Of a stretch of DNA of 64,000 bases, positions 2,334-48,263 are shown piece after piece. The notes below the pieces were generated by a model. The model searched no databases. It saw only the letters and a list, made by a program, of their open reading frames with translations, and was not told the DNA's origin. This stretch comes from Diplonema japonicum (lineage: Eukaryota > Protista > Euglenozoa: Diplonemea), in contig OZ025681.1 of NCBI GenBank assembly GCA_964019335.1, positions 62,001-126,000 on the forward strand. The letters are read 5' to 3'. Each line of letters opens with the position of its first letter. The stretch's first letter is position 1. The translations under genes were made by a program, and so were the position numbers.

Positions 2334-5300
2334 TCATTTGCCGAACCTGTTTCGCAAGTCTTGCAACGCAACAGAGAGGAAGTCAGGCATCGCAATGCCT
2401 TGCGCAAGCCAAGCCGCTTCGATATCTGCAACTATCTTCTTGTTGCCCACCTCATTAGTGTGCGAAAGGTCCGCCATGAGCGCTACAACTGAGTTAGATT
2501 CAGTACAGTTCCTGGCATAGGCGTACATCCACTCCTCGTTCTCCGTCTCTAGATAGTTTCCAACATGGAAGATGACTTGTTCGCTGCCCAATCTCCGGAA
2601 CTCAGGGCCAAATATAGTCACAGGGGTGACATCCACAGTGGCATTCACTACGAGGGCCACCGGGTTCTCGATCAAGACGTTTGCCTGCAGAGCACAACTC
2701 CGCTCCGACAGGTACCTCACTGACTGCATCACCTTCCCAAGCGCCGTGAACGCCTTCAACGCAAGCGACCCACACGATGCTACGGTAGCCCTACCTGTCG
2801 CGACCCCGATACCTATGCCGTATTCCTTGATCTCTTCTACTAGCTTGTCACGCACCATCATCGCGCACTGGCACGCTTTCATGATGTTTGACACAAGATG
2901 CGTCGTGATGTTCAGCCCGATGATGCTCTGGTCGCCAGACGTGCTGAGAAGAGCTCCCCTCCCACCACCTTGTGTCACCGTGCTCACCGCATCTAAAATT
3001 GTAGTCACGTTGTTGACAGAGTCACCAGGGTACCAGATAGACACAAGGCTGATGGTCTTCACCGTTGCCTGCATCTTCATCTGTGTCACTGGCGCCAACG
3101 GCATACTCCCCGACGACACGGAAGCTGCTGTTCGCGAGGAGTTCGAGTTCTTCGACGCTTGCTCGGGGTCTTGCTCCTTTGGTTGTGCTTGCTCCTCTTC
3201 CTTGTCTGTCTCCTGCAGAAAGAGGGAGGCGGGCATGTAGGCCTTGTACTCGTTGAGGATGTCGCACATGGCATAGAAGCCAGAGAGCAGGGCGGAGACC
3301 TCCAGAAGAATGCTGTCCCTCTTCACCACCCTGTCCATTTCCATGTTCTCCACATGCTTCATGTCCCGCACAAGGCTGATGAAGGGCTGGGTGATCACAA
3401 CAGCACATGCAAGAAGAACCACAACTCCAAGGGCCGCAAGCATCACAGACAGGTCGATCGCCTCCTCATATGCCTCCTCCGCATCCCCCATGATCACAAC
3501 GTGTGGTGTGATGTACACCACCAACCAGTCCACAGTATAGGTCTTGGAGGCCGGCTTCTGTATATTCAGCATTGAGGCATACACCTTCTCACCACCAGAG
3601 GAGTACAGGTACGACCTCTCAGGGTCAATGAGTGATGTGTTCCAGTTCTCGATGCTCGCAAGGGCACCAGAGACCCACGGGTGTGCCACAGTTTCACCAG
3701 CTTCAGCCACATCCCCAGGTCCCATCACCTCCACTCCCACAGGCTGCTGTTGCTCATCGTTGGCGAGAAGTACCTCCCTCGTCCTTCTGTCGATGAGCAC
3801 GATCAGTGACCTCGCAGGTACCCGCATGCGTGCAATGTCCTGTTTGATGACCCCCAGGATGCGCTGCAGGAGGAACGGAACGGATACAGACCCACTGCTT
3901 TTTGACACGACGTTCTCAACTGTCCCATGAACAGAGATCTCCACACCCAACATGCTCTGCAGACGCCAACGCTCCGAGAGGTCCTCGCTGATGTCGCGGA
4001 TCGCAGTGTCGTTCCTGGTCACCACCACACCGAGCACCACGGCGAAGGAGGTGAGTGCCACAACCCCAAGCATCACAGAGACAGGAACCTTAAACGATTT
4101 GCTCCTTCCGTGAAGGCTACTGGCATTCTTGACTATCATGAAGATGATGCCAACCAGCATTCCACCGCTAAAGATAGAGACATTTACCATCGCAATCCTC
4201 GTGTCCGTCCACTCCTCACGGGAGTAGTCGATGCCAGAGATGCTCACTTCCTTCAGAAGGACTTCAAGCTCCTTCTCCATCAGGGCAACAGTTTTCTCAG
4301 CAGCGCCGTCCCTAGCGAAGAAGTCCCTCACGTTTCTGAAGACTATGTCAACGCACTCTGCGTACAGCACGCGGCACCCTCTGCTCGGGCGGTGTACCAA
4401 CCTTTCCCAGAACTCTGGGTAGGCCTGCATCGACGTTGCCAGCATCGCATTCGCTTTCTCCATATTAGCCCAAAAGTCAGGTCTCTGCATCACATCCTCC
4501 CTGATGGGCTCCCGTCCAGAGTAGTCGAAGTACGAGAAGTGCTCAGACAAGTCGTTCACAAGGTCCATGGCTGCCTCCTTGTTTTTTGTGTACTTGTTGA
4601 TGCCAATGCTCCAGTCCCCAGAGCAGCCTGACCCGTTGTTACCAGGGACGGGTGCCATTTGGATGTCCCACATTTTCGATTCACTTATTTTCGACAAGCC
4701 GACACTGCTTGACACCCAATGGAACAGGACACCAGCTGTGCCTTCCTCGAATTGTTTTTTGGCAGATGAGGCCTTGAGTCCCCAGAGGTTGTGCGGGGCA
4801 ATGGTGCCCACCCAGCGCTTCCACATCTCAAGGGTGCGTGCCGCCGCAGGGTTGTTCACCGTCACATTCCCACTGTCGTCAACGATGTTCCCAGCACCAT
4901 CAAAACCCGACATGAGCGTCACGAGCGTGTAAATAATCTCATTGCCCGAGTTCGAGTCGGTCGGAAGCAACACACCGTTGAAGACGGAGGTCTTCGTACG
5001 CTCAGCACGCTCCTTCTCCACGAGGGTGTCTAAGGTCGTCTCGAACTCCTCCCAGGTCGCAGGCCAGGTGAGACCGTGCTTGTCGAAGAGGTCCTTGCGG
5101 TAGTAGGCCACCATCTGGTTGGTCTGCCTCGTGAGGGTGTAGAGCTTCCCGTTCGGGGACATGTGAAGCTGCCACTTCTTCCTGATGATGTTGGGGTTGA
5201 TGTCCAGCTCGATGAGCTCGTCCTGAAGGGTGGTGACCCAAGGGGTGTCCAGGCTCATCACCTCGTAGTCGTTGCCCTTGTTGTACAACATGTTTGTTAC

Positions 5301-5555
5301 AAAGGTGAAGTCGTCGTCAGTACTGTCGTAGCCGAAGAGGTTCTGGATGTTGATGGAGGCCATCTCCGTGTCGGGGTGCTTCACGGTGAAGTTGAGGGTC
5401 ACATCGCACATATCCTTTCGCAGGATCTCCATGATCACGTTGTGCACGTTCAGCGGCTCCTTGCTGCCTGTGGGCCTCGGGCAGTTGTAGGGCGATGGGG
5501 TCGGCTCAGGATCAGGGACAGATATCATAACTAATATAATACACAATGGTAACAT
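2334..5555 (-). CDS. Receptor copy 1: sugar-SBP / 3TM / Cache-like / HAMP / degenerate class III cyclase (about 1073 aa)
   Basis: Long ORF whose first ATG is at 5555 (MLPLCIILVMIS). It contains SBP motif YYRKDLFDKHGLTWPATWEEF, three hydrophobic segments, HAMP-like QPFISLVRDMKHVENM..EVSALLSGFYAM and cyclase-like IGIGVATG..SCGS..FTALGKV..VRYL. Confidence 0.88.
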   Translation of the reverse strand: MLPLCIILVMISVPDPEPTPSPYNCPRPTGSKEPLNVHNVIMEILRKDMCDVTLNFTVKHPDTEMASINIQNLFGYDSTDDDFTFVTNMLYNKGNDYEVMSLDTPWVTTLQDELIELDINPNIIRKKWQLHMSPNGKLYTLTRQTNQMVAYYRKDLFDKHGLTWPATWEEFETTLDTLVEKERAERTKTSVFNGVLLPTDSNSGNEIIYTLVTLMSGFDGAGNIVDDSGNVTVNNPAAARTLEMWKRWVGTIAPHNLWGLKASSAKKQFEEGTAGVLFHWVSSSVGLSKISESKMWDIQMAPVPGNNGSGCSGDWSIGINKYTKNKEAAMDLVNDLSEHFSYFDYSGREPIREDVMQRPDFWANMEKANAMLATSMQAYPEFWERLVHRPSRGCRVLYAECVDIVFRNVRDFFARDGAAEKTVALMEKELEVLLKEVSISGIDYSREEWTDTRIAMVNVSIFSGGMLVGIIFMIVKNASSLHGRSKSFKVPVSVMLGVVALTSFAVVLGVVVTRNDTAIRDISEDLSERWRLQSMLGVEISVHGTVENVVSKSSGSVSVPFLLQRILGVIKQDIARMRVPARSLIVLIDRRTREVLLANDEQQQPVGVEVMGPGDVAEAGETVAHPWVSGALASIENWNTSLIDPERSYLYSSGGEKVYASMLNIQKPASKTYTVDWLVVYITPHVVIMGDAEEAYEEAIDLSVMLAALGVVVLLACAVVITQPFISLVRDMKHVENMEMDRVVKRDSILLEVSALLSGFYAMCDILNEYKAYMPASLFLQETDKEEEQAQPKEQDPEQASKNSNSSRTAASVSSGSMPLAPVTQMKMQATVKTISLVSIWYPGDSVNNVTTILDAVSTVTQGGGRGALLSTSGDQSIIGLNITTHLVSNIMKACQCAMMVRDKLVEEIKEYGIGIGVATGRATVASCGSLALKAFTALGKVMQSVRYLSERSCALQANVLIENPVALVVNATVDVTPVTIFGPEFRRLGSEQVIFHVGNYLETENEEWMYAYARNCTESNSVVALMADLSHTNEVGNKKIVADIEAAWLAQGIAMPDFLSVALQDLRNRFGK

Positions 5556-5644
5556 TTGTCCCCCCCCCCTCCCTTCCCACTGCACTAAAGCGGCGTAGAG
5601 TTAGGTGCGAAAATAGACACTAAATAAAGAAGAAAACGAAAATA

Positions 5645-7701: not shown

Positions 7702-10700
7702 CTACTCAACTATTAGCCTCAACCGAAGGTCGCTGAGGGCAGCGTTTAGGTACTCTGGTCTTTCATCCCCGCCTTGCGAAAGCCATGAAGCTTCGATGCT
7801 GGATATGATCCTCTTGTTGGGCCCCTTGTTAGTATAAGAGAGTTCAGACATCAGTGAAACGACGGAATTTGCATCTGTTGAGTTCCTGGCATAGGCGTAC
7901 ATCCACTCCTCGTTCTCTGTCTCTAGATAGTCCTCGACACAGAAGACCACCTGATCGGTGCCTACTCTGTTGAACTCTGAGCCAAACACAGTAATGGGAA
8001 ACACATCAATGCCCGCGTTCACAACTAGCGCCACCGCACTCTCAACTAGGATGCTTGCCCCAAAGTCGCAGCCCTTCTCCGACAGGTACCTAACCGACTT
8101 CATCACTCTCCCAAGCGCCGTGAACGCCTTCAACGAAAGCGACCCACACGATGCTACGGTAGCCCTACCTGTCGCGACCCCGATACCTACATTGCTTTCA
8201 GACAGCTTGTCACGCACCATCATCGCGCACTGGCACGCCTTCATCCCGTTGTTAACTAAGTTCGTCGTGATGTTCAGCCCGATGATGCTCTGGTCGCCAG
8301 ACGTGCTGAGAAGAGCTCCCCTCCCACCACCGCTCGTCACCGTGCTCACCGCATCTAAAACTGCGGTCATTTCAACCACAGAGTCCCCAGGGTACCAGAT
8401 AGACACAAGGCTGACGTTCTTCACCGTCGCCTGCATCTTCATCTGAATCACTGGTACCACAGATGGCTCGCTCGATGAGTTCCCGGTTCGAGAGGACTGC
8501 GAGTTCTTCGATGTTCTAGACAAGGCGAGCGACATGTCGTCATCTGCGTCGGAGGACTCGTCCTTCTGGAAGAGGGAGGCGGGCATGTAGGCCTTGTACT
8601 CGTTGAGGATGTCGCACATGGCATGGAAGCCAGAGAGCAGGGCGGAGACCTCCAGAAGAATGCTGTCCCTCTTCACCACCTTGTCCATTTCCATGTTCTC
8701 CACATGCTTCATGTCCCGCACAAGGCTGATGAAGGGCTGGGTGATCACAACAGCACATGCAAGAAGAACCACAATCCCAATAGCTGCAAGCATCACAGAC
8801 AGGTCGATCGCCTCCTCATATGCATCCTCCGCATTCCCCATGATCACAACGTGTGGTGTGATGTACACCAGTAGCCAGTCCACAGTATTGGCGTCGAACG
8901 TCACTGTCTTGATATTCAGCATTGAGGCATACACCTTCTCACCAGAGGAGTACAGGTACGACCTCTCAGGGTCAATGAGTGATGTGTTCCAGTTCTCGAT
9001 GCTCGCAAGGGCACCAGAGACCCACGGGTGTGCCACAGTTTCACCAGCTTCAGCCACAACCCCAGGTCCCATCACCTCCACTCCCACAGGCTGCTGTTGC
9101 TCATCGTTGGCGAGAAGTACCTCCCTCGTCCTTCTGTCGATGAGCACGATCAGTGACCTCGCAGGTACCTCCATCCGAGAGATGTCTTGTTTGATGTTCC
9201 CAAGAACCTTCTGTAGGAGGAGCGAGGAGGTCACAGTAGCCTGCGTCACCACTGTCTCGATAGTGCCGTGGATGGAGATCTCTATTGAGAGTATGCTCTG
9301 CTGCCTGAGCTGCTCCGAGAGGTCCTCGCTGATGTCGCGGATCGCAGTGTCGTTCATGGTCACCACCACACCGAGCACCACGGCGAAGGAGGTGAGTGCC
9401 ACAACCCCAAGCATCACAGAGACAGGAACCTTAAACGAATTGCCCTCCCTGCGGAGGTTCTTCGCATTCCTCACAATCATGAAGATGATGCCAATGAACA
9501 TCCCAGCAGAGAACACTGAGATCCCAAGCATCGCAACCCTTGTGTCCGTCCACTCTTCACGGGTGTAGTCGGCTCCAGAGATGTCAATCACACCAAGCAG
9601 CACCTTGAGATCATTCTCCATCAAGGAGACAGTTTGCTCGGCTGCACCGTCTGCCGAAAGGAAGAAGTCTTTGACGTGCCTAAAAACAATATTGATGCAG
9701 TCTTCGTACAGTGCCTTGCAACCAGCACTTGGGCGGTGTACCAACCTTTCCCAGAACCCTGGGAAGGTCTGCATCGACGTTGCCAGCATTGGGTTCACCT
9801 TCCTCAGGTCGTCCCAGAACCCAGGCCTGTCCATCACATCCTTACGCACAGGTTCCTTGTCAGAGTTATCGAAGAACGAGAAGTGCATCGAATAGTCAGT
9901 CAGGAGGTCCACCGCCTCCTTCACGAAGGGGGAGTGCTTGTTGACACCGTAATTCCAGTCGTTGGAGCAGCCAGCCCCGTACTTCCCAGGGACTGATGCC
10001 ATTTGGATGTCCCATCCGTTGTCCTCGCTCACTTCTACCATGCCGAAGACACTTGAAGACCAGTTCAGGATGATGGCTGACTTCCCCGACTTGAAGTTTT
10101 CAGAAGCCTTGTTGCCAGTGTACCCAAAGAGGTCGATGGGGGCGATCGTCCCAATCCAGCGCTTCCACATGGTAAGGGTGCGTGCCGCCGCAGGGTTGTT
10201 GATCGTCACCTTGCCGTCTGCCTCCACAATGCTGCCAGCACCCTCGAAGCCAGACATGAGCGTCACAAGCATGTAAGCAATGGAATCCTGAGAGCCTGGG
10301 TCGGTCGCTAGCACCACACCATCGAAGTCAGTGTTCCCACCAGCATGCTCCTTCTCCACGAGGGTCGTCAGGGTCGTCTCGAACTCCTCCCAGGTCGCAG
10401 GCCAGGTGAGGTTGTGCTTGTCGAAGAGGTCCTTGCGGTAGTAGGCCACCATCTGGTTGGTCTGCCTCGTGAGGGTGTAGAGCTTCCCGTTCGGGGAGAC
10501 ATGGATCCGCCACTTCTTCCTGATGAGGTTGGGGTCCACGTCCAGTTCCACCAGGTCATCAGCAAGGGTGGTGACCCATTGGGTCTTGAGGTCCATCACC
10601 TCGTAGCCTGTCTCCTTGTTATGGAGCATGTTCTGCAGGAAGGTGAAGTCGTCGTCTTTAGAAGTGCGCCCAAACATTTCTTTGAGGTCCACAGACTCCA

Positions 10701-10881
10701 TCCCCACGTCGGGGTGCTTCACAGTGAAGTTGGCCGTCACCTCGCACACCTTGCGCTCCAGCGTGCTCACCATTGCTTTGTTAACGTGCAAAGTGTTGTT
10801 CACATGGACAGGGATCTCGCACTTTGCTGATACCACACACGCCACCTGGCATGCAATCAAGAAACCGCTGCCTACCCGCAT
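7702..10881 (-). CDS. Receptor copy 2 (1059 aa), same architecture; SBP subtype II
   Basis: ORF with signal peptide MRVGSGFLIACQVACVVSA and the same motifs as copy 1. Confidence 0.92.
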   Translation of the reverse strand: MRVGSGFLIACQVACVVSAKCEIPVHVNNTLHVNKAMVSTLERKVCEVTANFTVKHPDVGMESVDLKEMFGRTSKDDDFTFLQNMLHNKETGYEVMDLKTQWVTTLADDLVELDVDPNLIRKKWRIHVSPNGKLYTLTRQTNQMVAYYRKDLFDKHNLTWPATWEEFETTLTTLVEKEHAGGNTDFDGVVLATDPGSQDSIAYMLVTLMSGFEGAGSIVEADGKVTINNPAAARTLTMWKRWIGTIAPIDLFGYTGNKASENFKSGKSAIILNWSSSVFGMVEVSEDNGWDIQMASVPGKYGAGCSNDWNYGVNKHSPFVKEAVDLLTDYSMHFSFFDNSDKEPVRKDVMDRPGFWDDLRKVNPMLATSMQTFPGFWERLVHRPSAGCKALYEDCINIVFRHVKDFFLSADGAAEQTVSLMENDLKVLLGVIDISGADYTREEWTDTRVAMLGISVFSAGMFIGIIFMIVRNAKNLRREGNSFKVPVSVMLGVVALTSFAVVLGVVVTMNDTAIRDISEDLSEQLRQQSILSIEISIHGTIETVVTQATVTSSLLLQKVLGNIKQDISRMEVPARSLIVLIDRRTREVLLANDEQQQPVGVEVMGPGVVAEAGETVAHPWVSGALASIENWNTSLIDPERSYLYSSGEKVYASMLNIKTVTFDANTVDWLLVYITPHVVIMGNAEDAYEEAIDLSVMLAAIGIVVLLACAVVITQPFISLVRDMKHVENMEMDKVVKRDSILLEVSALLSGFHAMCDILNEYKAYMPASLFQKDESSDADDDMSLALSRTSKNSQSSRTGNSSSEPSVVPVIQMKMQATVKNVSLVSIWYPGDSVVEMTAVLDAVSTVTSGGGRGALLSTSGDQSIIGLNITTNLVNNGMKACQCAMMVRDKLSESNVGIGVATGRATVASCGSLSLKAFTALGRVMKSVRYLSEKGCDFGASILVESAVALVVNAGIDVFPITVFGSEFNRVGTDQVVFCVEDYLETENEEWMYAYARNSTDANSVVSLMSELSYTNKGPNKRIISSIEASWLSQGGDERPEYLNAALSDLRLRLIVE

Positions 10882-11637: not shown

Positions 11638-14600
11638 TCAGTCACCGGCTGTGCCTTCAGACTGCATCGCTCCGGGATGGGGTGCCTGGGGACTAGGGGA
11701 TTCAGAAGGCTGCTCTGTGCTGTCCTCCTGCCTGTTATTGCCTTTGCTGCTTTTGCTGTCGCGCTCTTTGTTGTCGTCGATGTTGCTATCGATGCGTTGC
11801 TCTCCTGGGCAGTACTTCCTCTTTAGTTCACAGATGGCTCTAATCAAGTACTCAGGCATCTCACTTTGGGCCAACCACATTGCCTCAATGCTCATCACTG
11901 TCTTTTTGTTCACATCTTTGGTGAATTCGGGAGACAGCCCAGCCAACATAGCTACTAATGAGTTGGTCTCTGTGGCATTGCGAGCCAGTGCATACATCCA
12001 CTCCTCGTTGGCAGACTCCATTAGGTCACCAGCACGGAAGATGACCTGATCATTTCCCGTTCTCCTGTGCTCTGAGCTGAACACAGCCACAGGCAAAATG
12101 TCAATGAAGCCGCTCACCACCAGGGCCACCGGGTTCTCGATTAGTACACACGCCTGGAGGTCGTACCCCCTCTCCGACAGGTACCTCGCAGTCCGCATCA
12201 CCTTCCCAAGCGCCGTGAACGCCTTCAACGCAAGCGACCCACACGATGCTACGGTAGCCTTCCCCGTCGCAACCCCAATCCCGATGCCTTCGCCTTCTTT
12301 AAATTCGTCATCAAGCCTGTCACGCACCAATATCGCGCACTGGCATGCTTTCATGATGTTCCCAACCAAGTTCGTCGTAATATTCAGCCCGATGATGCTC
12401 TGGTCGCCAGACGTGCTGAGAAGAGCTCCCCTCCCACCACTGCTAGTCACCGTGCTCACCGCATCCAAAACTGCGGTCACACCAGCCACAGAGTCACCAG
12501 GGTACCAGATAGACACAAGGCTGACGTTCTTCACCGTCGCCTGCATCTTCATCTGATTCACTGGTGCTGATGCAAGTTGCTCGCTCGATGACTTATCCGC
12601 GTGTGACGACAAGGACTGCGTGCGTGTGTGTGCGTGCGAAGTCTTCGAAACACATATCGACATTTCATCAGCTGAAGATTCAGAAGACTCTTCCTTCTGG
12701 AAGAGGGAGGCGGGCATGTAGGCCTTGTACTCGTTGAGGATGTCGCACATAGCATAGAAGCCAGAGAGCAGGGCGGAGACCTCCAGAAGAATGCTGTCCC
12801 TCTTCACCACCTTGTCCATTTCCATGTTCTCCACATGCTTCATGTCCCGCACAAGGCTGATGAAGGGCTGGGTGATCACAACAGCACATGCAAGAAGGAC
12901 CACAATTCCAACAGCTGCAAGCATCACAGACAGGTCGATCGCCTCCTCATATGCATCCTCCGCATTCCCCATGATCACAACGTGTGGTGTGATGTACACC
13001 AGTAGCCAGTCAATGCTGCTCGGGTTGAAAGTAGGCTTATTGATATTTAGCATTGAGGCATACACCTTCTCACCAGAGGAGTACAGGTACGACCTCTCAG
13101 GGTCAATGAGTGATGTGTTCCAGTTCTCGATGCTCGCAAGGGCACCAGAGACCCACGGGTGTGCCACAGTTTCACCAGCTTCAGCCACAACCCCAGGTCC
13201 CATCACCTCCACTCCCACAGGCTGCTGTTGCTCATCGTTGGCGAGAAGTACCTCCCTCGTCCTTCTGTCGATGAGCACGATCAGTGACCTCGCAGGTACC
13301 CGCATGCGTGCAATGTCCTGTTTGATGACCCCCAGGATGCGCTGCAGGAGGAACGAGTGTGTCACGCTGCTTCTTGTCACAAGGCTCTCGATCGTGCCGT
13401 GTACTGAGATCTCCATTGCCAACATGCTCTGCTGCCTGAGCCGCTCCGAGAGGTCCTCGCTGATGTCGCGGATCGCAGTGTCGTTCCTGGTCACCACCAC
13501 ACCGAGCACCACGGCGAAGGAGGTGAGTGCCACAACCCCAAGCATCACGGAGACAGGAACCTTTAACGAACTGTTCTGCTTGCGGAGACTCTGCGCATTC
13601 CTCACAATCATGAAGATGATGCCAGCAAGAATCCCAGCAGAGAAGAGAGAGAGGCACACCATCGCCACCCTCGTGTCCGTCCACTCCTCACGGGAGTAGT
13701 CGATGCCAGAGATGTCAACGTCGCCAACCAGCTGGACGAGCTCCTTCTCCATCAGGGACACAGCCTCCTCGGCGGTACCATCTGTCGAAAGAAAAAAGTC
13801 ACTGACATGCTTGAAGACGATGTTGATGCAGTCCCCGTACAGTGCCTTGCACCCAGCACTTGGGCGGTGCACCAGCCTGTCCCAGAACTCTGGGTAGGCC
13901 TGCATCGACTTTGCCAGCAGCGGGTTCGCGGTCGTCATATTAGCCCAAAAGTGAGGCCTCTGCATCACATCCTGCCGGATGGGCTCCCGTCCAGAGTAGT
14001 CGAAGTACGAGAAGTGCTCAGACAAGTCGTTCACAAGGTCCATGGCTGCCTCCTTCAAAGGGGAGTGCTTGTTGACGCCGATGCTCCAGTCCCCAGAGCA
14101 GCCTGCCCCGTACTTCCCGGGGACGGGTGCCATTTGGATGTTCCAGTTATTCTCAACACCTTTCGTTCCCAAGCTGACACTGCTCGAAACCCAGTAGAAC
14201 AGGACACCAGCCCTCCCCTTTTTGAATTCGTTCTGTGCAACCGAGCCCTTCTGCCCCCAGAGGCTCGTTGAACCGATGGTACCGACCCAGCGCTTCCACA
14301 TCGCAATGGTGCGTGCCGCCGCAGGGTTGTTGATCGTCACCTTGCCGTCCGGTTCCACCACGTTCCCAGCACCCTCGAAGCCAGACATGAGCGTCACGAG
14401 CGAGTAGATGATCTCGTTCTGCGAGTTCGAGTCGGTCGGGAGCACCACACCGTTGAAGTCGGTGTTCCCATCAGCACGCTCCTTCTCCACGAGGGTCGTC
14501 AGGGTCGTCTCGAACTCCTCCCAGGTCGCAGGCCAGGTGAGGTTGTGCTTGTCGAAGAGGTCCTTGCGGTAGTAGGCCACCATCTGGTTGGTCTGCCTCG

Positions 14601-15012
14601 TGAGGGTGTAGAGCTTCCCGTTCGGGGAGACATGGATCCGCCACTTCTTCCTGATGAGGTTGGGGTCCACGTCCAGTTCCACCAGGTCGCGCTGGAGGGT
14701 GGTGACCCAAGGGGTGTCCAGGCTCATCACCTCGTAACCTGTCTCCTTGTTGTACAACATGTTCTGCAGGAAGGTGAAGTCGTCGTCCGTGTTGTCGTAG
14801 CCGAAGAGGTTCTGGATGTTGATGGAGGCCATCTCCGTGTCGGGGTGCTTCACAGTGAAGTTGGCCGTCACATCGCACCTGTCATTTCGCAGGATCTCCA
14901 TGATCACGTTGTGCACGTTCAGCGGCCCCTTGCTGCCTGTGGGTCTCGGGCAGTTGTAAGCACTCGTATCATGGTGAAGCATAATGCAAATAGCGAGCAA
15001 CAAGGCTCTCAT
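11638..15012 (-). CDS. Receptor copy 3 (about 1124 aa); SBP subtype I; unique C-terminal tail
   Basis: The likely start is the ATG at 15012 (MRALLLAICIMLHHDTSA), which follows a polypyrimidine/CAG. The ORF-track extension to 15093 is pyrimidine tract. Confidence 0.9.
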   Translation of the reverse strand: MRALLLAICIMLHHDTSAYNCPRPTGSKGPLNVHNVIMEILRNDRCDVTANFTVKHPDTEMASINIQNLFGYDNTDDDFTFLQNMLYNKETGYEVMSLDTPWVTTLQRDLVELDVDPNLIRKKWRIHVSPNGKLYTLTRQTNQMVAYYRKDLFDKHNLTWPATWEEFETTLTTLVEKERADGNTDFNGVVLPTDSNSQNEIIYSLVTLMSGFEGAGNVVEPDGKVTINNPAAARTIAMWKRWVGTIGSTSLWGQKGSVAQNEFKKGRAGVLFYWVSSSVSLGTKGVENNWNIQMAPVPGKYGAGCSGDWSIGVNKHSPLKEAAMDLVNDLSEHFSYFDYSGREPIRQDVMQRPHFWANMTTANPLLAKSMQAYPEFWDRLVHRPSAGCKALYGDCINIVFKHVSDFFLSTDGTAEEAVSLMEKELVQLVGDVDISGIDYSREEWTDTRVAMVCLSLFSAGILAGIIFMIVRNAQSLRKQNSSLKVPVSVMLGVVALTSFAVVLGVVVTRNDTAIRDISEDLSERLRQQSMLAMEISVHGTIESLVTRSSVTHSFLLQRILGVIKQDIARMRVPARSLIVLIDRRTREVLLANDEQQQPVGVEVMGPGVVAEAGETVAHPWVSGALASIENWNTSLIDPERSYLYSSGEKVYASMLNINKPTFNPSSIDWLLVYITPHVVIMGNAEDAYEEAIDLSVMLAAVGIVVLLACAVVITQPFISLVRDMKHVENMEMDKVVKRDSILLEVSALLSGFYAMCDILNEYKAYMPASLFQKEESSESSADEMSICVSKTSHAHTRTQSLSSHADKSSSEQLASAPVNQMKMQATVKNVSLVSIWYPGDSVAGVTAVLDAVSTVTSSGGRGALLSTSGDQSIIGLNITTNLVGNIMKACQCAILVRDRLDDEFKEGEGIGIGVATGKATVASCGSLALKAFTALGKVMRTARYLSERGYDLQACVLIENPVALVVSGFIDILPVAVFSSEHRRTGNDQVIFRAGDLMESANEEWMYALARNATETNSLVAMLAGLSPEFTKDVNKKTVMSIEAMWLAQSEMPEYLIRAICELKRKYCPGEQRIDSNIDDNKERDSKSSKGNNRQEDSTEQPSESPSPQAPHPGAMQSEGTAGD

Positions 15013-16233
15013 CTTGTTACAATTTGGAGTAACTGAAAGAAACTGAAACAAAAAAGAAATCAGGAAAGAATATGGAGTAAAGTGTGGGGGCATAAAAACG
15101 GGGGGTGGGGGGGGGAGAGGAAATACGGCATAATGGGAGGACCGTTAAAAGAAATATTCTTTTTAAAAAAGAAAAAGAGTCGGTTTCTTAGCATTTGTTT
15201 GTTGTTTGTGCACACGGTACAAGTCCTGAGATGAGTACTGCTTGCTGCCACTACTCTTTTTTTCTTGTTCTTTGTTGCTACAAGAAAGTGAGCAGCACTT
15301 GTTAAATTCAAAAAAAAAAAAAAAAAAAAACGAAAAGAGGAGATAAAGAGGAACTGGCCGTTGCTTGTTCGTGCCGGGGTATGCACGCTGCAATCATTCC
15401 CTTTTTTTTGTCTTGGAAAAAAAAAAAAAGAAAGAAAACCTTTACGGGATATCACTGGCCATTTCTCTTTTCTTTTTCTCTTTTTGGAAGGTACTAGTTT
15501 GCTTGCGTGACAGACTGTCATCTGGACTTGTTTGCTCGGAATTCTACTTGTTTCTCCTTAAAACGAACAGGAAAAGGCTATCCTTGTAGCCTTTCTTGTA
15601 GCATGTCCATAAGCATGTTTTCACAGATTCCGTTGCTTGTGACTCCTGATGATTTGGGAACGAAGTGGTAAGAGATCCACTTGGGAGGGAAAAAAAAAGG
15701 GAGGACCAAAAAAAAAAAAAAAAAAAAAAGAATTCCTATGATACGGGGAGGGTTAACCATCTGGCTCCAGATGTACAGTTAGGGAGAGAGAGAGAGAGGG
15801 CCCGCAGACCACCCAGCAAGGGGACAGGCATGCAAGAAAAAGGGTGGGTAAAGATGATGACTTTTGAAATACAAAAAAAGAAAAAAAAAAGGCTGTCCTG
15901 ACACAGTTTCTTTTTCTTTTTGCCAAAATATATTTACCCCCCTGCCCAAGGGGAGGGGAAAAAAAAAATAACTTTCAAAACTATATGTACGGTCTACAGG
16001 TTAAAGGTAAATAACCAGCTTTTCTCTTTTGAGTGTAGAAAATGATACTTTTGAACTTGAACTCCCGCGTGAGGCAAAGAAGCGCGAGAAGCAGAAGAAA
16101 GAAGAAAGAGAAAAAAAAAAGCCATTGCTACAGTTTGTAAAACCTTAAGAATAATTCTTTGCTCGGCACAAGGCCACAAGGAGTACAAGTCATAGTTATC
16201 ATTTCGTACCTCAAAACTGTGAAACTGTGGTGG

Positions 16234-16266
<33 letters not shown>

Positions 16267-22274: not shown

Positions 22275-22430
22275 TTTCTTTTTAAAGTATCTGTTGTAGT
22301 TACGCATGTCGCTAAAAAAGAAAGTCAGGGAACGTGTAAAAGCCAAGATACCCATGAGGGAAAGAAGAACAGAACACGTGATCTGTAGTCCCTCATCCGC
22401 CGCAGTGCCCTGGGAAAAAAGAGAAAGAGT

Positions 22431-22720
22431 ATGTGAGACGCCCCTATGTTCTCATCCATCCCTTCAACAGCGGTTTTTGCTTCTTTGGTGGTCATGCAGC
22501 CTCCTCCACAGCTTGACTGCCTTTTCCTCTTTCCATCCTCTGTCCATTGCTCCTTCAACTCTTCTGGGTCGTATTTGGGTTTCTTCGAAGCAGGTAGTGC
22601 TCTCCTGCCCCGCCCGATCATCGCCTTCGCCCCCCCAATGGATCGCAGCTTGTGTACCCCCCGCACGATTCAGCAGGGAAGGTCCTCCTTCGTTTCACCC
22701 TCTTCACGCGAGGGTCCAGC
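22431..22720 (-). mobile_element. Degenerate 3' fragment of retroelement family R1
   Basis: Translates, with a frameshift, to RRTFPAE..HKLRSIGGAKAMIGRGRRA, similar to the 62527 ORF segment RRPFPAD..KSLIAIGGKAAIGFSRRP. It ends in the shared gtgagacgccc..gttctcat motif. Confidence 0.7.
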
Positions 22721-22721
22721 G

Positions 22722-28986: not shown

Positions 28987-28998
28987 GTCAACTTCCTC

Positions 28999-36959: not shown

Positions 36960-39900
36960 CTAGTGGCAAAATCTAGATCTCAGATCCTGAAGTGAGTCAG
37001 CCAGGTAGCCTGCCATCTCTGTGCCTTGTGTGGACCACGCTGCCTCGATGGCCACCATCTGTTTCTTGTTGCTCTCACTGTTGAGCAAGGTGAGATGTGC
37101 CATGCAAGAGGCAACAGAGTTGGCGTCGGTAGCGTTCCTGGCGTAGGCGTACATCCACTCCTCGTTCTCTGTCTCGAGGAACGAGCCTGCACGGAAGATG
37201 ACCTGGTCGCTGCCGGACCTCTTGTGCTCCAAGGCGTACACAGTGACGGGTTCCACCTCCATGCACCCCTTCACAACCAGCGCCACAGAGTTCTCCAGCA
37301 TCACCCCCGCCTTCAAGGTGCACCCCCTCTCCGACAGGTACCTCACAGATGGCATCACCTTCCCAAGCGCCGTGAACGCCTTCAACGCAAGCGACCCACA
37401 CGATGCTACGGTAGCCTTCCCCGTCGCACACCCGATCCCGACAGCGTGCTTCCCAAGCTCGCTCCCCAACCTGTCCCGCACCATCACCGCGCACTGGCAC
37501 GCCTTCATGTTGTGTGACACAAGATGCGTCGTGATGTTCAGCCCGATGATGCTCTGGTCGCCAGTCGTGCTGAGAAGAGCTCCCCTCCCACCACCGCTCG
37601 TCACCCCGCTCACCGCATCCAAGATCGTCGTCACGTGTCCCACAGAGTCCCCAGGGTACCAGATAGACACAAGGCTGATGCTTTTCGTCGTTGCCTGCAT
37701 CTTCATCTGGCTCACCACACCTATCGGTGCAGGGGTGTCACCAGTATGGTGGGAGGTTGCAGTGCGCGATGAACGTGACGTCTTTGAAAGGGACTCTTCA
37801 TCAACATCCGAGGACTCGTCCTTCTGGAAGAGGGAGGCGGGCATGTAGGCCTTGTACTCGTTGAGGATGTCGCACATGGCATAGAAGCCAGAGAGCAGGG
37901 CGGAGACCTCCAGAAGAATGCTGTCCCTCTTCACCACCTTGTCCATTTCCATGTTCTCCACATGCTTCATGTCCCGCACAAGGCTGATGAAGGGCTGGGT
38001 GATCACAACAGCACATGCAAGAAGGACCACAATTCCAATAGCTGCAAGCATCACAGACAGGTCGATCGCCTCCTCATATGCATCCTCCGCATCCCCCATG
38101 ATCACAACGTGTGGTGTGATGTACACCAGTAGCCAGTCAATGCTGTAGGTTAGGTACTTCGCTTCGACATCTGAAGCAGCCTTCTTGATGTTCAGCATTG
38201 AGGCATACACCTTCTCACCACCAGAGGAGTACAGGTACGACCTCTCAGGGTCAATGAGTGATGTGTTCCAGTTCTCGATGCTCGCAAGGGCACCAGAGAC
38301 CCACGGGTGTGCCACCCCAGAAACAGCCCCAATGCCTGACAACACTGTGCCGACAGGTTGCTGCTTGTCATCGTTCGAGAGAAGCACCTTCCTCGTTGTC
38401 CTGTCGATGAGCACGATCAGTGACCTCGCAGGTACCCGCATGCGTGCAATGTCCTGTTTGATGTTCCCAAGAACCCTTGACATGAGGAGTGCAAAGGTCG
38501 CACTGTTCTTCTCCACAAGGCTCTCAATAGTTCCGTGGATGGAAATCTCAAGAGCAAGCATGCTCTGCTGCCTGAGCCGCTCCGAGAGGTCCTCGCTGAT
38601 GTCGCGGATCGCAGTGTCGTTCCTGGTCACCACCACACCGAGCACCACGGCGAAGGAGGTGAGTGCCACAACCCCAAGCATCACAGAGACAGGAACCTTA
38701 AAAGAAATATCATTGCAGAGGCTTCTGGCTCCCCTCACAATCATCCACACGATTCCAACCAGGAAAACACCACAACAGAGAGAGATCACCACCATTGCCA
38801 CCCTTGTGTCCGTCCACTCGTCGCGGGAGTAGTCGATGCCAGAGATGTCGATCACGCCAAACAGAACATGAAGGTCCTTCTCCATCGCTGCCACAGCCTC
38901 CGCCCCAGTCTGGCCCTCCGTGAGAAAGAAAGAAGTAACATGCTTGAAGACGATGTTGACGCAGTCCCCGTACAGTTCCTTGCACCCAGCACTTGGGCGG
39001 TGCACCAGCCTGTCCCAGAACTCTGGGTAGGCCTGCATCGACTTCGCCAGCATTGGGTTCGAGCTGTTGAACTTTACCCAGAAGTCAGGCCTGTCCATCA
39101 CATCCTGACGAGCAGGCTCGTTTCCAGTGAGGTCGAAGAATGAGAAGTGCTCAGACAGGTCGCTGACAAGATCCTGGGCTGCCTCCTTCAGGGGTGTGTG
39201 CTTGTTGATGCCAATGCTCCAGTCCCCAGAGCAGCCTGCCCCGTTGTTCCCAGGGATGGGCCCTATCTGGATGTCCCAGCCTAAAGAAGAGTTGTCAATG
39301 TTCGCCTGGTTCATCACGGTACTGTCGGAGGACCACAGGATGAGGCACGCTGACTTCCCTGCAAGAAAGTTTGTTTTAGCACCCCCACTGGTGAGTCCCC
39401 AGAGGTTGTGCGGGGCAATGGTGCCCACCCAGCGCTTCCACATGGTAAGGGTACGTGCCGCCGCAGGGTTGTTCACCGTCACGTTCCCACTGTCGTCAAC
39501 CACATTCCCAGCACCATCAAAACCCGACATGAGCGTCACGAGCATGTAAATAATACGGTTCTGCGAGTTCGAGTCGGTCGGAAGCAGTACACCATCGAAG
39601 TCGGTGTTCCCACCAGCACGCTCCTTCTTCACGAGGGTGTCCAAGGTCGTCTCGAACTCCTCCCAGGTAGCGGGGTAGGTGAGACCGTGCTTGTCGAAGA
39701 GGTCCTTGCGGTAGAACACCACCATCTGGTTGGTCTGCCTCGTGAGGGTGTAGAGCTTCCCGTTCGGAGACATGTGAAGCTGCCACTTCTTCCTGATGAT
39801 GTTGGGGTTGATGTCCAGCTCGATGAGCTCGTCCTGAAGGGTGGTGACCCACGGGGTGTCCAGGCTCATCACCTCGTAACCTGTCTCCTTGTTGTACAAC

Positions 39901-40169
39901 ATGTTCTGCAGGAAGGCGAAGTCGTTGTCATGGTTGTACGAAAACTCCTTCAGATCGATGTACTGGATCCCCACGTCGGGGTGCTTGGCTGTGAAGTTGT
40001 CGTTGACTTCGCACAGGGTTGTGTTCAATGCGGAAGTGATTGCAGTGTGGACATGCAGAGTGTGATTTTTGTTGTCAGGAAGCGTGCAATTGTCCTTGTT
40101 AGATCCGTAGACATCAGCAACGTTGCACAGCACTGCCACGTACAACAGCACACCTTTCGCTCCCATCAT
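36960..40169 (-). CDS. Receptor copy 7 (1069 aa); SBP subtype III
   Basis: ORF with signal peptide MMGAKGVLLYVAVLCNVADVYG and the same motifs. Confidence 0.93.
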   Translation of the reverse strand: MMGAKGVLLYVAVLCNVADVYGSNKDNCTLPDNKNHTLHVHTAITSALNTTLCEVNDNFTAKHPDVGIQYIDLKEFSYNHDNDFAFLQNMLYNKETGYEVMSLDTPWVTTLQDELIELDINPNIIRKKWQLHMSPNGKLYTLTRQTNQMVVFYRKDLFDKHGLTYPATWEEFETTLDTLVKKERAGGNTDFDGVLLPTDSNSQNRIIYMLVTLMSGFDGAGNVVDDSGNVTVNNPAAARTLTMWKRWVGTIAPHNLWGLTSGGAKTNFLAGKSACLILWSSDSTVMNQANIDNSSLGWDIQIGPIPGNNGAGCSGDWSIGINKHTPLKEAAQDLVSDLSEHFSFFDLTGNEPARQDVMDRPDFWVKFNSSNPMLAKSMQAYPEFWDRLVHRPSAGCKELYGDCVNIVFKHVTSFFLTEGQTGAEAVAAMEKDLHVLFGVIDISGIDYSRDEWTDTRVAMVVISLCCGVFLVGIVWMIVRGARSLCNDISFKVPVSVMLGVVALTSFAVVLGVVVTRNDTAIRDISEDLSERLRQQSMLALEISIHGTIESLVEKNSATFALLMSRVLGNIKQDIARMRVPARSLIVLIDRTTRKVLLSNDDKQQPVGTVLSGIGAVSGVAHPWVSGALASIENWNTSLIDPERSYLYSSGGEKVYASMLNIKKAASDVEAKYLTYSIDWLLVYITPHVVIMGDAEDAYEEAIDLSVMLAAIGIVVLLACAVVITQPFISLVRDMKHVENMEMDKVVKRDSILLEVSALLSGFYAMCDILNEYKAYMPASLFQKDESSDVDEESLSKTSRSSRTATSHHTGDTPAPIGVVSQMKMQATTKSISLVSIWYPGDSVGHVTTILDAVSGVTSGGGRGALLSTTGDQSIIGLNITTHLVSHNMKACQCAVMVRDRLGSELGKHAVGIGCATGKATVASCGSLALKAFTALGKVMPSVRYLSERGCTLKAGVMLENSVALVVKGCMEVEPVTVYALEHKRSGSDQVIFRAGSFLETENEEWMYAYARNATDANSVASCMAHLTLLNSESNKKQMVAIEAAWSTQGTEMAGYLADSLQDLRSRFCH

Positions 40170-44299: not shown

Positions 44300-44339
44300 A
44301 ACAAAATAGTCGTTCACAAAAAAGCTACCGCCTCATATC

Positions 44340-44376
<37 letters not shown>

Positions 44377-45068: not shown

Positions 45069-48000
45069 CTAGTGGCAAAATCTAGATCTCAGATCCTGAA
45101 GTGAGTCAGCCAGGTAGCCTGCCATCTCTGTGCCTTGTGTGGACCACGCTGCCTCGATGGCCACCATCTGTTTCTTGTTGCTCTCACTGTTGAGCAAGGT
45201 GAGATGTGCCATGCAAGAGGCAACAGAGTTGGCGTCGGTAGCGTTCCTGGCGTAGGCGTACATCCACTCCTCGTTCTCTGTCTCGAGGAACGAGCCTGCA
45301 CGGAAGATGACCTGGTCGCTGCCGGACCTCTTGTGCTCCAAGGCGTACACAGTGACGGGTTCCACCTCCATGCACCCCTTCACAACCAGCGCCACAGAGT
45401 TCTCCAGCATCACCCCCGCCTTCAAGGTGCACCCCCTCTCCGACAGGTACCTCACAGATGGCATCACCTTCCCAAGCGCCGTGAACGCCTTCAACGCAAG
45501 CGACCCACACGATGCTACGGTAGCCTTCCCTGTTGCACACCCGATCCCGACAGCGTGCTTCCCAAGCTCGCTCCCCAACCTGTCCCGCACCATCACCGCG
45601 CACTGGCACGCCTTCATGATGTGTGACACAAGATGCGTCGTGATGTTCAGCCCGATGATGCTCTGGTCGCCAGTCGTGCTGAGAAGAGCTCCCCTCCCAC
45701 CACCGCTCGTCACCCCGCTCACCGCATCCAAGATCGTCGTCACGTGTCCCACAGAGTCCCCAGGGTACCAGATAGACACAAGGCTGATGCTTTTCGTCGT
45801 TGCCTGCATCTTCATCTGGCTCACCACACCTATCGGTGCAGGGGTGTCACCAGTATGGTGGGAGGTTGCAGTGCGCGATGAACGTGACGTCTTTGAAAGG
45901 GACTCTTCATCAACATCCGAGGACTCGTCCTTCTGGAAGAGGGAGGCGGGCATGTAGGCCTTGTACTCGTTGAGGATGTCGCACATGGCATAGAAGCCAG
46001 AGAGCAGGGCGGAGACCTCCAGAAGAATGCTGTCCCTCTTCACCACCTTGTCCATTTCCATGTTCTCCACATGCTTCATGTCCCGCACAAGGCTGATGAA
46101 GGGCTGGGTGATCACAACAGCACATGCAAGAAGGACCACAATTCCAATAGCTGCAAGCATCACAGACAGGTCGATCGCCTCCTCATATGCATCCTCCGCA
46201 TCCCCCATGATCACAACGTGTGGTGTGATGTACACCAGTAGCCAGTCAATGCTGTAGGTTAGGTACTTCGCTTCGACATCTGAAGCAGCCTTCTTGATGT
46301 TCAGCATTGAGGCATACACCTTCTCACCACCAGAGGAGTACAGGTACGACCTCTCAGGGTCAATGAGTGATGTGTTCCAGTTCTCGATGCTCGCAAGGGC
46401 ACCAGAGACCCACGGGTGTGCCACCCCAGAAACAGCCCCAATGCCTGACAACACTGTGCCGACAGGTTGCTGCTTGTCATCGTTCGAGAGAAGCACCTTC
46501 CTCGTTGTCCTGTCGATGAGCACGATCAGTGACCTCGCAGGTACCCGCATGCGTGCAATGTCCTGTTTGATGTTCCCAAGAACCCTTGACATGAGGAGTG
46601 CAAAGGTCGCACTGTTCTTCTCCACAAGGCTCTCAATAGTTCCGTGGATGGAAATCTCAAGAGCAAGCATGCTCTGCTGCCTGAGCCGCTCCGAGAGGTC
46701 CTCGCTGATGTCGCGGATCGCAGTGTCGTTCCTGGTCACCACCACACCGAGCACCACGGCGAAGGAGGTGAGTGCCACAACCCCAAGCATCACAGAGACA
46801 GGAACCTTAAAAGAAATATCATTGCAGAGGCTTCTGGCTCCCCTCACAATCATCCACACGATTCCAACCAGGAAAACACCACAACAGAGAGAGATCACCA
46901 CCATTGCCACCCTTGTGTCCGTCCACTCGTCGCGGGAGTAGTCGATGCCAGAGATGTCGATCACGCCAAGCAGAACATGAAGGTCCTTCTCCATCGCTGC
47001 CACAGCCTCCGCCCCAGTCTGGCCCTCCGTGAGAAAGAAAGAAGTAACATGCTTGAAGACGATGTTGATGCAGTCCCCGTACAGTGCCTTGCACCCAGCA
47101 CTTGGGCGGTGCACCAGCCTGTCCCAGAACTCGGGGTAGGCCTGCATCGACTTCGCCATAATTGGGTTCACCTCATTGAACTTTACCCAGAAGTCAGGCC
47201 TGTTCATCACATCCTGACGAGCAGGCTCGTTTCCAGTGAGGTCGAAGAATGAGAAGTGCTCAGACAGGTCGCTGACAAGATCCTGGGCTGCCTCCTTCAG
47301 GGGTGTGTGCTTGTTGATGCCAATGCTCCAGTCCCCAGAGCAGCCTGCCCCATTGTTCCCAGGGATGGGCCCTATCTGGATGTCCCAGCCGATTGTAGAG
47401 TTGTCGTTAATTTTGTTCATCACGGTACTGTCGGAGGACCACAGGATGAGGCACGCTGACTTCCCTGCAAGAAAGTTATTCCTCGCACCCCCACTGGTGA
47501 GTCCCCAGAGGTTGTGCGGGGCAATGGTGCCCACCCAGCGCTTCCACATCTCAAGGGTGCGTGCCGCCGCAGGGTTGTTCACCGTCACGTTCCCACTGTC
47601 GTCAACCACATTCCCAGCACCATCAAAACCCGACATGAGCGTCACGAGCATGTAAATAATACGGTTCTGCGAGTTCGAGTCGGTCGGAAGCAGTACACCA
47701 TCGAAGTCGGTGTTCCCACCAGCACGCTCCTTCTTCACGAGGGTGTCCAAGGTCGTCTCGAACTCCTCCCAGGTAGCGGGGTAGGTGAGACCGTGCTTGT
47801 CGAAGAGGTCCTTGCGGTAGAACACCACCATCTGGTTGGTCTGCCTCGTGAGGGTGTAGAGCTTCCCGTTCGGAGACATGTGAAGCTGCCACTTCTTCCT
47901 GATGATGTTGGGGTTGATGTCCAGCTCGATGAGCTCGTCCTGAAGGGTGGTGACCCACGGGGTGTCCAGGCTCATCACCTCGTAACCTGTCTCCTTGTTG

Positions 48001-48263
48001 TACAACATGTTCTGCAGGAAGGTGAAGTCGTTGTCATTGTTGTACGAAAAGTCGTTCAGATCGATGTACTGGATCCCCACGTCGGGGTGCTTGGCTGTGA
48101 AGTTGTTGTTGACTTCGCACAGGGTTGTGTTCAGCGCGGAAGTGATTGCAGTGTGGACATGCAGAGTGTGCTTTTTGTTGTCAGGAAGCGGGCAGCTTCC
48201 GTAGACATCAGCAACGTTGCACAGCACTGCCACGTACAACAGCACACCTTTCGCTCCCATCAT
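45069..48263 (-). CDS. Receptor copy 8 (1064 aa); SBP subtype III, C-terminal 60% near-identical to copy 7
   Basis: ORF with the same signal peptide and motifs as copy 7. Confidence 0.93.
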   Translation of the reverse strand: MMGAKGVLLYVAVLCNVADVYGSCPLPDNKKHTLHVHTAITSALNTTLCEVNNNFTAKHPDVGIQYIDLNDFSYNNDNDFTFLQNMLYNKETGYEVMSLDTPWVTTLQDELIELDINPNIIRKKWQLHMSPNGKLYTLTRQTNQMVVFYRKDLFDKHGLTYPATWEEFETTLDTLVKKERAGGNTDFDGVLLPTDSNSQNRIIYMLVTLMSGFDGAGNVVDDSGNVTVNNPAAARTLEMWKRWVGTIAPHNLWGLTSGGARNNFLAGKSACLILWSSDSTVMNKINDNSTIGWDIQIGPIPGNNGAGCSGDWSIGINKHTPLKEAAQDLVSDLSEHFSFFDLTGNEPARQDVMNRPDFWVKFNEVNPIMAKSMQAYPEFWDRLVHRPSAGCKALYGDCINIVFKHVTSFFLTEGQTGAEAVAAMEKDLHVLLGVIDISGIDYSRDEWTDTRVAMVVISLCCGVFLVGIVWMIVRGARSLCNDISFKVPVSVMLGVVALTSFAVVLGVVVTRNDTAIRDISEDLSERLRQQSMLALEISIHGTIESLVEKNSATFALLMSRVLGNIKQDIARMRVPARSLIVLIDRTTRKVLLSNDDKQQPVGTVLSGIGAVSGVAHPWVSGALASIENWNTSLIDPERSYLYSSGGEKVYASMLNIKKAASDVEAKYLTYSIDWLLVYITPHVVIMGDAEDAYEEAIDLSVMLAAIGIVVLLACAVVITQPFISLVRDMKHVENMEMDKVVKRDSILLEVSALLSGFYAMCDILNEYKAYMPASLFQKDESSDVDEESLSKTSRSSRTATSHHTGDTPAPIGVVSQMKMQATTKSISLVSIWYPGDSVGHVTTILDAVSGVTSGGGRGALLSTTGDQSIIGLNITTHLVSHIMKACQCAVMVRDRLGSELGKHAVGIGCATGKATVASCGSLALKAFTALGKVMPSVRYLSERGCTLKAGVMLENSVALVVKGCMEVEPVTVYALEHKRSGSDQVIFRAGSFLETENEEWMYAYARNATDANSVASCMAHLTLLNSESNKKQMVAIEAAWSTQGTEMAGYLADSLQDLRSRFCH

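Follow-up and report, generated by a model that had tools for sequence, protein, structure and literature searches.

Eight intact genes stand head to tail on one contig of the diplonemid Diplonema japonicum, and each encodes a membrane protein that begins with a sugar-type binding domain and ends in a cyclase fold. What kind of receptor do these domains compose, and how could it signal? The window analysed here is the whole stretch of 64,000 nt that holds the array (assembly GCA_964019335.1, contig OZ025681.1, positions 62,001-126,000, forward strand). An earlier reading of this DNA by a model, made from the letters of the window (the original prediction), had described an array at 2334-48263 whose members each carry a signal peptide, a solute-binding protein (SBP)-like domain, two transmembrane segments (TM1 and TM2) joined by a short basic loop, a Cache-like segment, a third transmembrane segment (TM3), a HAMP domain and a pseudo-cyclase. 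We find this order of domains and this topology in the array. Our preferred reading, to which we assign a probability of roughly 0.55, is that the product is a three-pass receptor whose SBP captures a glycan and docks on the Cache domain, with the signal passing through HAMP to a non-catalytic cyclase-fold output that works through a partner. The receptor is thus a candidate glycan sensor, which may serve sugar sensing and chemotaxis.

Membrane topology and the two extracytoplasmic domains

The list of open reading frames (ORFs) contains eight minus-strand paralogues of 1059-1151 amino acids (aa) each between 2334 and 48263. Copies 2-8 align with copy 1 from end to end at 66-75% identity, and a tblastn search of the window with copy 5 returned the eight array ORFs and one 37-aa relic, nothing else; the eight-gene array therefore stands as it was claimed. 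The family is expressed, since one D. japonicum transcript protein (P0001) is 98% identical to copy 6 and another protein of the transcriptome is 99% identical to copy 5 over its SBP part. The public runs that contain the stretch 24800-30600 proved to consist of genomic DNA contigs. The listed start of copy 1 is a GTG, with the first ATG ten codons in (about 5555). For copies 3 and 4 the true start is probably likewise an internal ATG, at the head of the signal-peptide-like stretch and near 15012 in copy 3. Copy 3 alone has an additional C-terminal tail of ~57 aa, of low complexity and rich in Ser, Glu and Pro (window 11638-11811).

Kyte-Doolittle hydropathy gives three strong segments (2.2-3.0) at equivalent positions in all eight copies, together with an N-terminal hydrophobic, signal-peptide-like stretch in each, as had been predicted. 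The signal peptide looks cleavable, as in a type-I start, and would export the SBP. The loop between TM1 and TM2 is short and basic (RNAKSLRKKNSSFKVP, the sequence that the original prediction quoted and that we find again in the alignment); by the positive-inside rule it would therefore be cytoplasmic, which would place the flanking domains, SBP and Cache, outside the cell. The spacing is retained in other diplonemids, where 24 of 24 full-length homologues keep TM1, ~35 aa, TM2, ~200 aa and TM3. Counts of N-glycosylation sequons and of Cys in the copies did not separate outer from inner parts.

The N-terminal domain is the part most readily recognized. Both SBP_bac_1 and SBP_bac_8 match it above the Pfam cut-off in all eight copies (E 2.8e-20 to 2.6e-16; 60.9-73.9 bits against a cut-off of 26), in agreement with the SBP-like domain claimed for every copy. 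Its relatives in the PDB are sugar-binding proteins (E 1e-22 to 1e-5), headed for copy 5 by the Thermus thermophilus ATP-binding cassette (ABC) substrate-binding series 6jar/6j9w (E 1.1e-22) and including the sulfoquinovosyl-glycerol binder SmoF, the trehalose/maltose-binding protein 1eu8, MalE3 and GacH. By its sequence matches, the domain is assigned to the CUT1-type (carbohydrate-family) solute-binding class. A search with the SBP by itself found three standalone bacterial SBPs, with a maximum identity of about 30%. A word-based search for bacterial SBP fusions, that is, for long proteins with a similar SBP, gave only diplonemid proteins and two odd fusions. In these, a related SBP is joined to a BPD_transp_1 ABC permease domain (P0164, 799 aa) or to shikimate-kinase-type domains (P0165, 599 aa); both sit on contigs of about 280-290 kb.

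Would such a domain deliver its ligand to a transporter? All 13 SBP_bac_1 matches in the genome lie within open frames of 1037-1367 aa, and the ABC-importer permease family BPD_transp_1 (PF00528) has no match in the 62.5-Mb genome, although the control search was positive in 14 of 14 reference genomes. In this genome there is thus no importer that the domain could supply, which speaks for a role in signalling.

Between TM2 and TM3 lie 181-186 aa, close to the ~180 aa of the predicted Cache-like segment, and the motif quoted for its end is found there as DWL(L/V)VYITP. An AlphaFold2 (AF2) model built with 32 homologues (predicted local distance difference test, pLDDT, 86; predicted template modelling score, pTM, 0.81) begins with a long helix, continues with a second helix and an antiparallel sheet and ends in the TM3 helix. 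This is the Cache/PDC fold: ranks 1-14 of a structural search of representatives are all extracytoplasmic Cache/PDC sensors (VIA-align Z 9.9-12.4), among them Mlp24 (Z 12.4), the WalK ectodomain (Z 12.0, 142/147 residues aligned), Tlp3 (Z 12.0), PctA, PctD, Adeh_3718 and TlpB, and in the top matches nearly whole single-module chains are aligned. Foldseek likewise matches WalK (E 5e-4), and LuxQ scores Z 8.0 (3c38) and 7.1 (2hj9). Pfam matched no family on this segment (aa 509-694) up to E 10. A weak NCBIfam match to GepA (E 2.8e-4), which runs from the last part of Cache through TM3 and HAMP, was not relied upon.

The Cache domains of the matched structures Mlp24, Tlp3, PctA and TlpB bind ligands directly, and two-pass dCache_1-HAMP relatives with the same output lack any SBP. 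These observations would suit the dual-sensor receptor of the original prediction, in which SBP and Cache would each bind a small ligand of their own and the two inputs would be integrated. However, the Cache domain here is a lone small module without Cys, it varies less from copy to copy than the SBP does, and among the proteins that we fetched its subtype was always accompanied by an SBP and hairpin, save in N-terminally truncated models (shorter relatives whose first residues align in mid-SBP). We therefore regard two independent sensors as unlikely and prefer a Cache domain that receives the SBP.

HAMP and the cyclase-fold output

The segment directly after TM3 was modelled by AF2 as a helix (2-14), a connector and a second helix (29-49, model numbering). 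In hhalign, the family segment aligned with seven HAMP domains of E. coli K-12 (Tar, Tap, Tsr, EnvZ, CpxA, NarX and PhoQ) with a probability of 86.3% (P 4.8e-6, 48 columns), against at most 1.6% in 30 column-shuffled controls, and its N-terminal Pro (AS1), the Glu that starts AS2 and an F-x-x-M motif are in register with the E. coli domains. The HAMP domain that had been predicted after TM3 is thus borne out by model and alignment. The Pfam model PF00672 gave no match to the window proteins up to E 10, nor did a five-sequence profile of the segment find a match among PDB sequences.

Behind a Ser/acidic linker, which is the most variable part among the copies, the cytoplasmic half folds as a class III cyclase. 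The copy 5 model (pLDDT 84) superposes in VIA-align on the soluble guanylyl cyclase alpha chain (Z 21.3), CyaB (Z 20.9) and Rv1625c (Z 20.8), with Z 16.5 for 1fx4, 14.5 for 6yii and about 10 for GGDEF domains; Foldseek gives E 4e-9. A 40-member family profile reaches CyaB (E 6e-23) and Cya2 (E 8e-22) in the PDB, and the language-model neighbours of the domain are bacterial HAMP+Guanylate_cyc clusters (0.93). Single-sequence and Pfam searches were blind to this relationship: phmmer of the C-terminal domain found no match among PDB sequences, and the Pfam model Guanylate_cyc (PF00211) remained unmatched by the window proteins even at E 10. The original prediction had expected profile searches to detect Cache, HAMP and cyclase; this failed for Pfam, with no match for any of the three up to E 10, and held for the structure and profile methods described above.

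The fold is kept, but its catalytic residues are not. Catalytic positions were mapped through printed alignments to class III cyclases (CyaB FSDIRGFT). Only the second metal Asp, that of GD, is retained. The first metal Asp is absent, falling in a gap of the automatic alignment or, by an ungapped reading, on a Trp beside a shortened loop, and most relatives have Asn there; the transition-state Asn is replaced by Arg, the transition-state Arg by Tyr and the substrate Lys by Ser. This state is the same in all eight copies. Since the losses affect both halves of the class III site, no homodimer or heterodimer could assemble a complete one. Judged by these residues, the domain cannot make cyclic AMP (cAMP) or cyclic GMP, alone or in a heterodimer, and the term pseudo-cyclase in the original prediction was well chosen. 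A three-helix extension follows, and the EWMY-type motif at its start is present in 137 of 161 fetched relatives.

Relatives of the receptor and divergence within the array

A profile running from Cache to the C-terminus collected 628 proteins at E <1e-3. The same three-pass layout is found in Diplonema ambulator, D. papillatum, Flectonema neradi and Sulcionema specki; the D. papillatum proteins of this layout are labelled "hypothetical protein" (e.g. KAJ9468282). The sensor half and the output module also occur in other company. The same sensor half is joined to a true cyclase in D. papillatum KAJ9465248 (named "Adenylate cyclase"), P0007 and P0012. The dead-cyclase/EWMY module is found on two-pass dCache_1 forms (P0030, P0034 and P0054), on a form with a PA plus laminin-G sensor, and on four proteins (P0021, P0031, P0050 and P0155) that consist of a signal peptide, SBP_bac_8/1, one TM segment, a short juxtamembrane helix and the EWMY dead cyclase, with no Cache domain or hairpin. 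The two-pass dCache_1 relatives and the single-pass SBP relatives, which share the same output, fit the proposal of the original prediction that a TM-Cache-TM-HAMP-cyclase core gained an N-terminal SBP together with a membrane anchor for it. Beyond the diplonemids, the dead-cyclase module is present in the euglenids Peranema and Entosiphon and in Naegleria gruberi.

The genome of D. japonicum itself holds one more dead-cyclase copy (42% identity), two more SBP-bearing long ORFs, and in all at least five intact receptor-length SBP ORFs outside the array. At least 28 other genes match the part from TM3 to the dead cyclase (query aa ~690-1010) and have other N-terminal parts, several of them in tandem arrays. 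Three SBP-hairpin-Cache-HAMP paralogues of 1293-1320 aa (L005-L007) end in a canonical cyclase domain (Pfam Guanylate_cyc, E 1e-18 to 1e-23); the L007 ORF is identical to the EukProt D. japonicum protein P0012. They keep FTDI, GD(S/A/T)F and N-x-A-A-(R/K)-L-E-S, with TVNKAA in two and AMNTAA in the third, and their cyclase domains are, on these motifs, apparently active. The FTDI...SST and GDSF motifs (GDSF in L007) resemble those of trypanosomatid cyclases.

Class III cyclases work as dimers, and in heterodimeric ones the degenerate half has a regulatory role. In the same way, the receptors of the array could pair with the catalytic paralogues, or with receptor cyclases of another kind, and modulate cAMP output; the three paralogues of the same genome share the sensor half and keep canonical catalytic motifs, and HAMP is 47% identical between the dead and the catalytic kinds. 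Nevertheless, a dead domain that lacks residues from both halves of the site would leave a heterodimer site incomplete and allow inhibition only. Moreover, the module is a distinct lineage of euglenids, diplonemids and Naegleria with its own EWMY tail, and a profile of the window proteins, dead cyclase included, aligns the catalytic paralogues through Cache, TM3 and HAMP only and not through their cyclase domains. We consider regulation of a partner cyclase quite unlikely and prefer an output that works through a partner without catalysis.

A quick tree groups the eight copies in a single clade, whose sister is a D. ambulator protein (Shimodaira-Hasegawa-like approximate likelihood ratio test, SH-aLRT, 99). 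The domains of the copies have diverged to very different degrees: mean identity is 0.71 in the SBP, the most diverged folded domain, 0.84 in Cache and 0.98 in TM3+HAMP, and synonymous divergence (dS) falls from 0.4-0.8 in the SBP to about 0-0.1 in TM3+HAMP and reaches saturation in the C-terminal tail. Over the DNA for the end of Cache, TM3 and HAMP, the eight copies agree at 94-99% identity, against 62-87% in neighbouring segments. Copy 3 matches copy 4 exactly over the SBP, the TM1-TM2 hairpin and TM3+HAMP, and nearly so over Cache, but the two have diverged in the cyclase-like domain and tail. By this pattern of identity, the core is a gene-conversion tract and copies 3 and 4 are mosaics; gene conversion accounts for the near-invariance of the core at least as much as constraint does, and that near-invariance is by itself no evidence of constraint. 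The array would be a recent tandem expansion that gene conversion has partly homogenized. Its members plausibly differ in ligand range, because the SBP is their most diverged folded part.

The ratio of non-synonymous to synonymous divergence (dN/dS) is about 0.3-0.45 in all domains, and 0.25-0.5 in the cytoplasmic domain. This bears on the idea that the protein is a passive tether, a surface binding protein that holds glycans or particles for feeding or adhesion while its cytoplasmic part serves as an anchor or scaffold. The output is not catalytic, and one report (PMC12697944) describes diplonemids as digesting polysaccharides at the cell surface, both of which would suit such a tether. An anchor would hardly explain a Cache-TM-HAMP relay in register with bacterial HAMP domains, however, nor an output domain conserved across Discoba, and the dN/dS of the cytoplasmic domain shows selection. 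A tether is thus improbable, and we continue with a signalling receptor.

The coordinates of the array and of related loci are collected in Table 1. Past the end of the array lie C2-domain ORFs (48524-50467 and 55813-57528) and two large ORFs with no Pfam match, at 50430-53648 and 57740-61957, which are unnamed membrane proteins. The intergenic segments that flank copy 5 (25188-25575 and 29068-29455) have a contig depth 100-1000x that of the genes in four DNA runs and look like very high-copy dispersed repeats. A long AT-rich spacer contains an exact duplicate of 195 nt (42809-43003 and 44105-44299).

Table 1. Features of the receptor array and of related loci in the same genome. Positions refer to the window unless a contig is named.
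Feature	Position	Strand	Details
Copy 1	2334..5585	-	1083 aa as listed; SBP_bac_1 E 2.8e-20; three TM; full-length alignment
Copy 2	7702..10881	-	1059 aa; Pfam SBP; alignment; three TM
Copy 3	11638..15093	-	1151 aa; Pfam SBP; alignment; three TM
Copy 4	19056..22355	-	1099 aa; Pfam SBP; alignment; three TM
N-terminal (signal-peptide) relic	22719..22826	-	57% identical to copy 5 aa 6-42; upstream of copy 4; tblastn
Copy 5	25786..28986	-	1066 aa; representative for structure models
Copy 6	30654..33845	-	1063 aa; Pfam SBP; alignment
Copy 7	36960..40169	-	1069 aa; Pfam SBP; alignment; three TM
Copy 8	45069..48263	-	1064 aa; final array member; adjoining gene an unrelated C2-domain protein
Copy 5, signal-peptide-like N-terminus	28921..28986	-	aa 1-22; precedes SBP
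Copy 5, sugar-type solute-binding domain	27652..28866	-	aa ~41-445; SBP_bac_1 E 4.4e-18, SBP_bac_8 E 2.6e-17
Copy 5, membrane hairpin	27463..27630	-	TM1 aa 453-471, basic loop RNAKSLRKKNSSFKVP, TM2 aa 490-508; hydropathy 2.41, 2.68
Copy 5, single Cache/PDC-fold ectodomain	26914..27456	-	aa 511-691; AF2, VIA-align and Foldseek
Copy 5, TM3	26848..26904	-	aa 695-713; hydropathy 2.97
Copy 5, HAMP	26677..26847	-	aa 714-770; AF2 helix-connector-helix; hhalign
Copy 5, disordered Ser/acidic linker	26530..26676	-	aa 771-819; pLDDT <50; mean pairwise identity 0.39
Copy 5, class III cyclase-fold domain without catalytic residues	25987..26529	-	aa 820-1000; VIA-align, Foldseek and profile
Copy 5, three-helix C-terminal extension starting at EWMY	25789..25986	-	aa 1001-1066; AF2 helices 289-352 (model numbering)
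Near-identical DNA core	26642-26962 (copy 5); e.g. 3184-3504, 8534-8854, 12665-12985		example positions lie in other copies
Catalytic paralogues L005-L007	C91:44221-46533, C103:217300-219615, C101:87178-89478		same genome
Further SBP-bearing long ORFs	C114:16327-19362, C82:222096-223001, C52:271779-272240		same genome
Further TM3-to-dead-cyclase genes	C61, C97, C103, C47		contigs of the same genome

Proposed mechanism, known systems and significance

How, then, could such a receptor signal? In the mechanism that we propose, the SBP would capture an extracellular glycoside or oligosaccharide and close around it. The closed SBP would then dock on the adjacent Cache domain of a dimeric receptor, in the fashion of LuxP on LuxQ. 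TM3 and HAMP may relay the resulting shift to the dead-cyclase dimer with its conserved helical EWMY tail. Instead of catalysing a reaction, the tail would signal by engaging a partner or letting it go.

Several points weigh against this proposal. The three-pass topology, with SBP and Cache outside, comes from hydropathy and the positive-inside rule rather than from a dedicated predictor. The ligand class is a guess at the level of the family, as the nearest standalone bacterial SBPs are ~29% identical. The conservation of Cache and HAMP is in part a product of gene conversion (dS about 0-0.1) and so is weak functional evidence, and at the level of whole domains dN/dS does not indicate that the SBP is under diversifying selection.

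The principle of docking is known from LuxP/LuxQ of Vibrio, TorT/TorS, ChvE/VirA and maltose-binding protein (MBP)/Tar, in each of which a periplasmic-type binding protein docks on the extracytoplasmic sensor of a receptor. The original prediction compared the array with MBP/Tar. LuxP/LuxQ is the better analogy, since LuxQ has a PAS/Cache-like sensor, as the diplonemid receptor does, while that of Tar is a four-helix bundle; docking itself would be the shared step that we propose. There are distinguishable differences from LuxP/LuxQ. In the diplonemid receptor, binding protein and receptor form one polypeptide by way of a TM hairpin, in a eukaryotic host; the sensor module is single and not tandem; and HAMP with a dead cyclase fold takes the place of a histidine kinase or a methyl-accepting chemotaxis protein as the output.

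Other known systems share single features of the layout. SBP Pfam profiles serve as sensor domains of bacterial receptors (PMC9602780). As in BvgS/EvgS-type kinases, a transmembrane signalling protein here carries a domain of the SBP family as a sensor on the same chain, but in those kinases the SBP is joined straight to the one TM segment that enters the membrane, with no known hairpin or second extracytoplasmic sensor. Profile and word-based searches of limited sensitivity found no bacterial protein with the three-pass layout. Receptors of the Cache-HAMP-class III cyclase type, which bacteria also possess, have the same core of TM, Cache, TM, HAMP and cyclase fold; Cache1-HAMP-cyclase families occur across eukaryotes, with a 'Cache1-HAMP-NCIII' subfamily in Euglena gracilis (PMC6366073). 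They differ from the array in that here an N-terminal SBP and hairpin are added, giving three passes, the catalytic residues are lost and the Pfam models are unmatched.

The trypanosomatid ESAG4/GRESAG4 cyclases are likewise receptors on the euglenozoan cell surface and join an ectodomain that resembles a binding protein to a cytoplasmic cyclase fold, but they are single-pass, active and have no known Cache or HAMP, whereas the receptors of the window have three TM segments and a dead active site. The ESAG4/GRESAG4 ectodomain belongs to a different class of binding protein. Class III pseudo-enzymes such as the cyclase-like ATP-binding protein of P. aeruginosa (6yii) have also kept the fold and lost the catalytic residues; unlike them, the module described here is a separate Discoba-wide lineage with a helical EWMY tail.

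A wider interpretation is that the array represents a diplonemid-specific receptor class, a one-chain LuxP/LuxQ with a non-catalytic Discoba-wide cyclase-fold output and a tandem repertoire for different algal glycans. We offer this tentatively, as a possibility that we would not yet count on. Is the architecture new, as the original prediction supposed? Among open-access papers and preprints, we found none on the three-pass SBP-hairpin-Cache-HAMP layout or on the EWMY dead-cyclase family, and the D. papillatum genome and subcellular-proteomics papers make no mention of cyclases, receptors or solute binding. The family is nevertheless already present in public databases as unnamed diplonemid proteins. 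The modules, and the principle of binding-protein sensors and Cache-HAMP-cyclase receptors, are known; the combined layout is undescribed, not unseen.

The receptor unites the bacterial modules SBP_bac_1, Cache and HAMP in one eukaryotic protein and constitutes a natural covalent fusion of a binding protein with the receptor on which it would otherwise dock. Its widespread cyclase-fold pseudo-enzyme would serve as an output module. Diplonemids are among the most abundant heterotrophic flagellates of the ocean and form one of the most species-rich groups of marine eukaryotes; to our knowledge, almost nothing is known of how they detect carbohydrate. The D. papillatum orthologues (e.g. KAJ9468282 and KAJ9458622) could make the family accessible to bench study and, if our reading is true, the array would offer a concrete molecular entry point, open to experimental test, into how carbohydrate, dissolved or particulate, is sensed by diplonemids.

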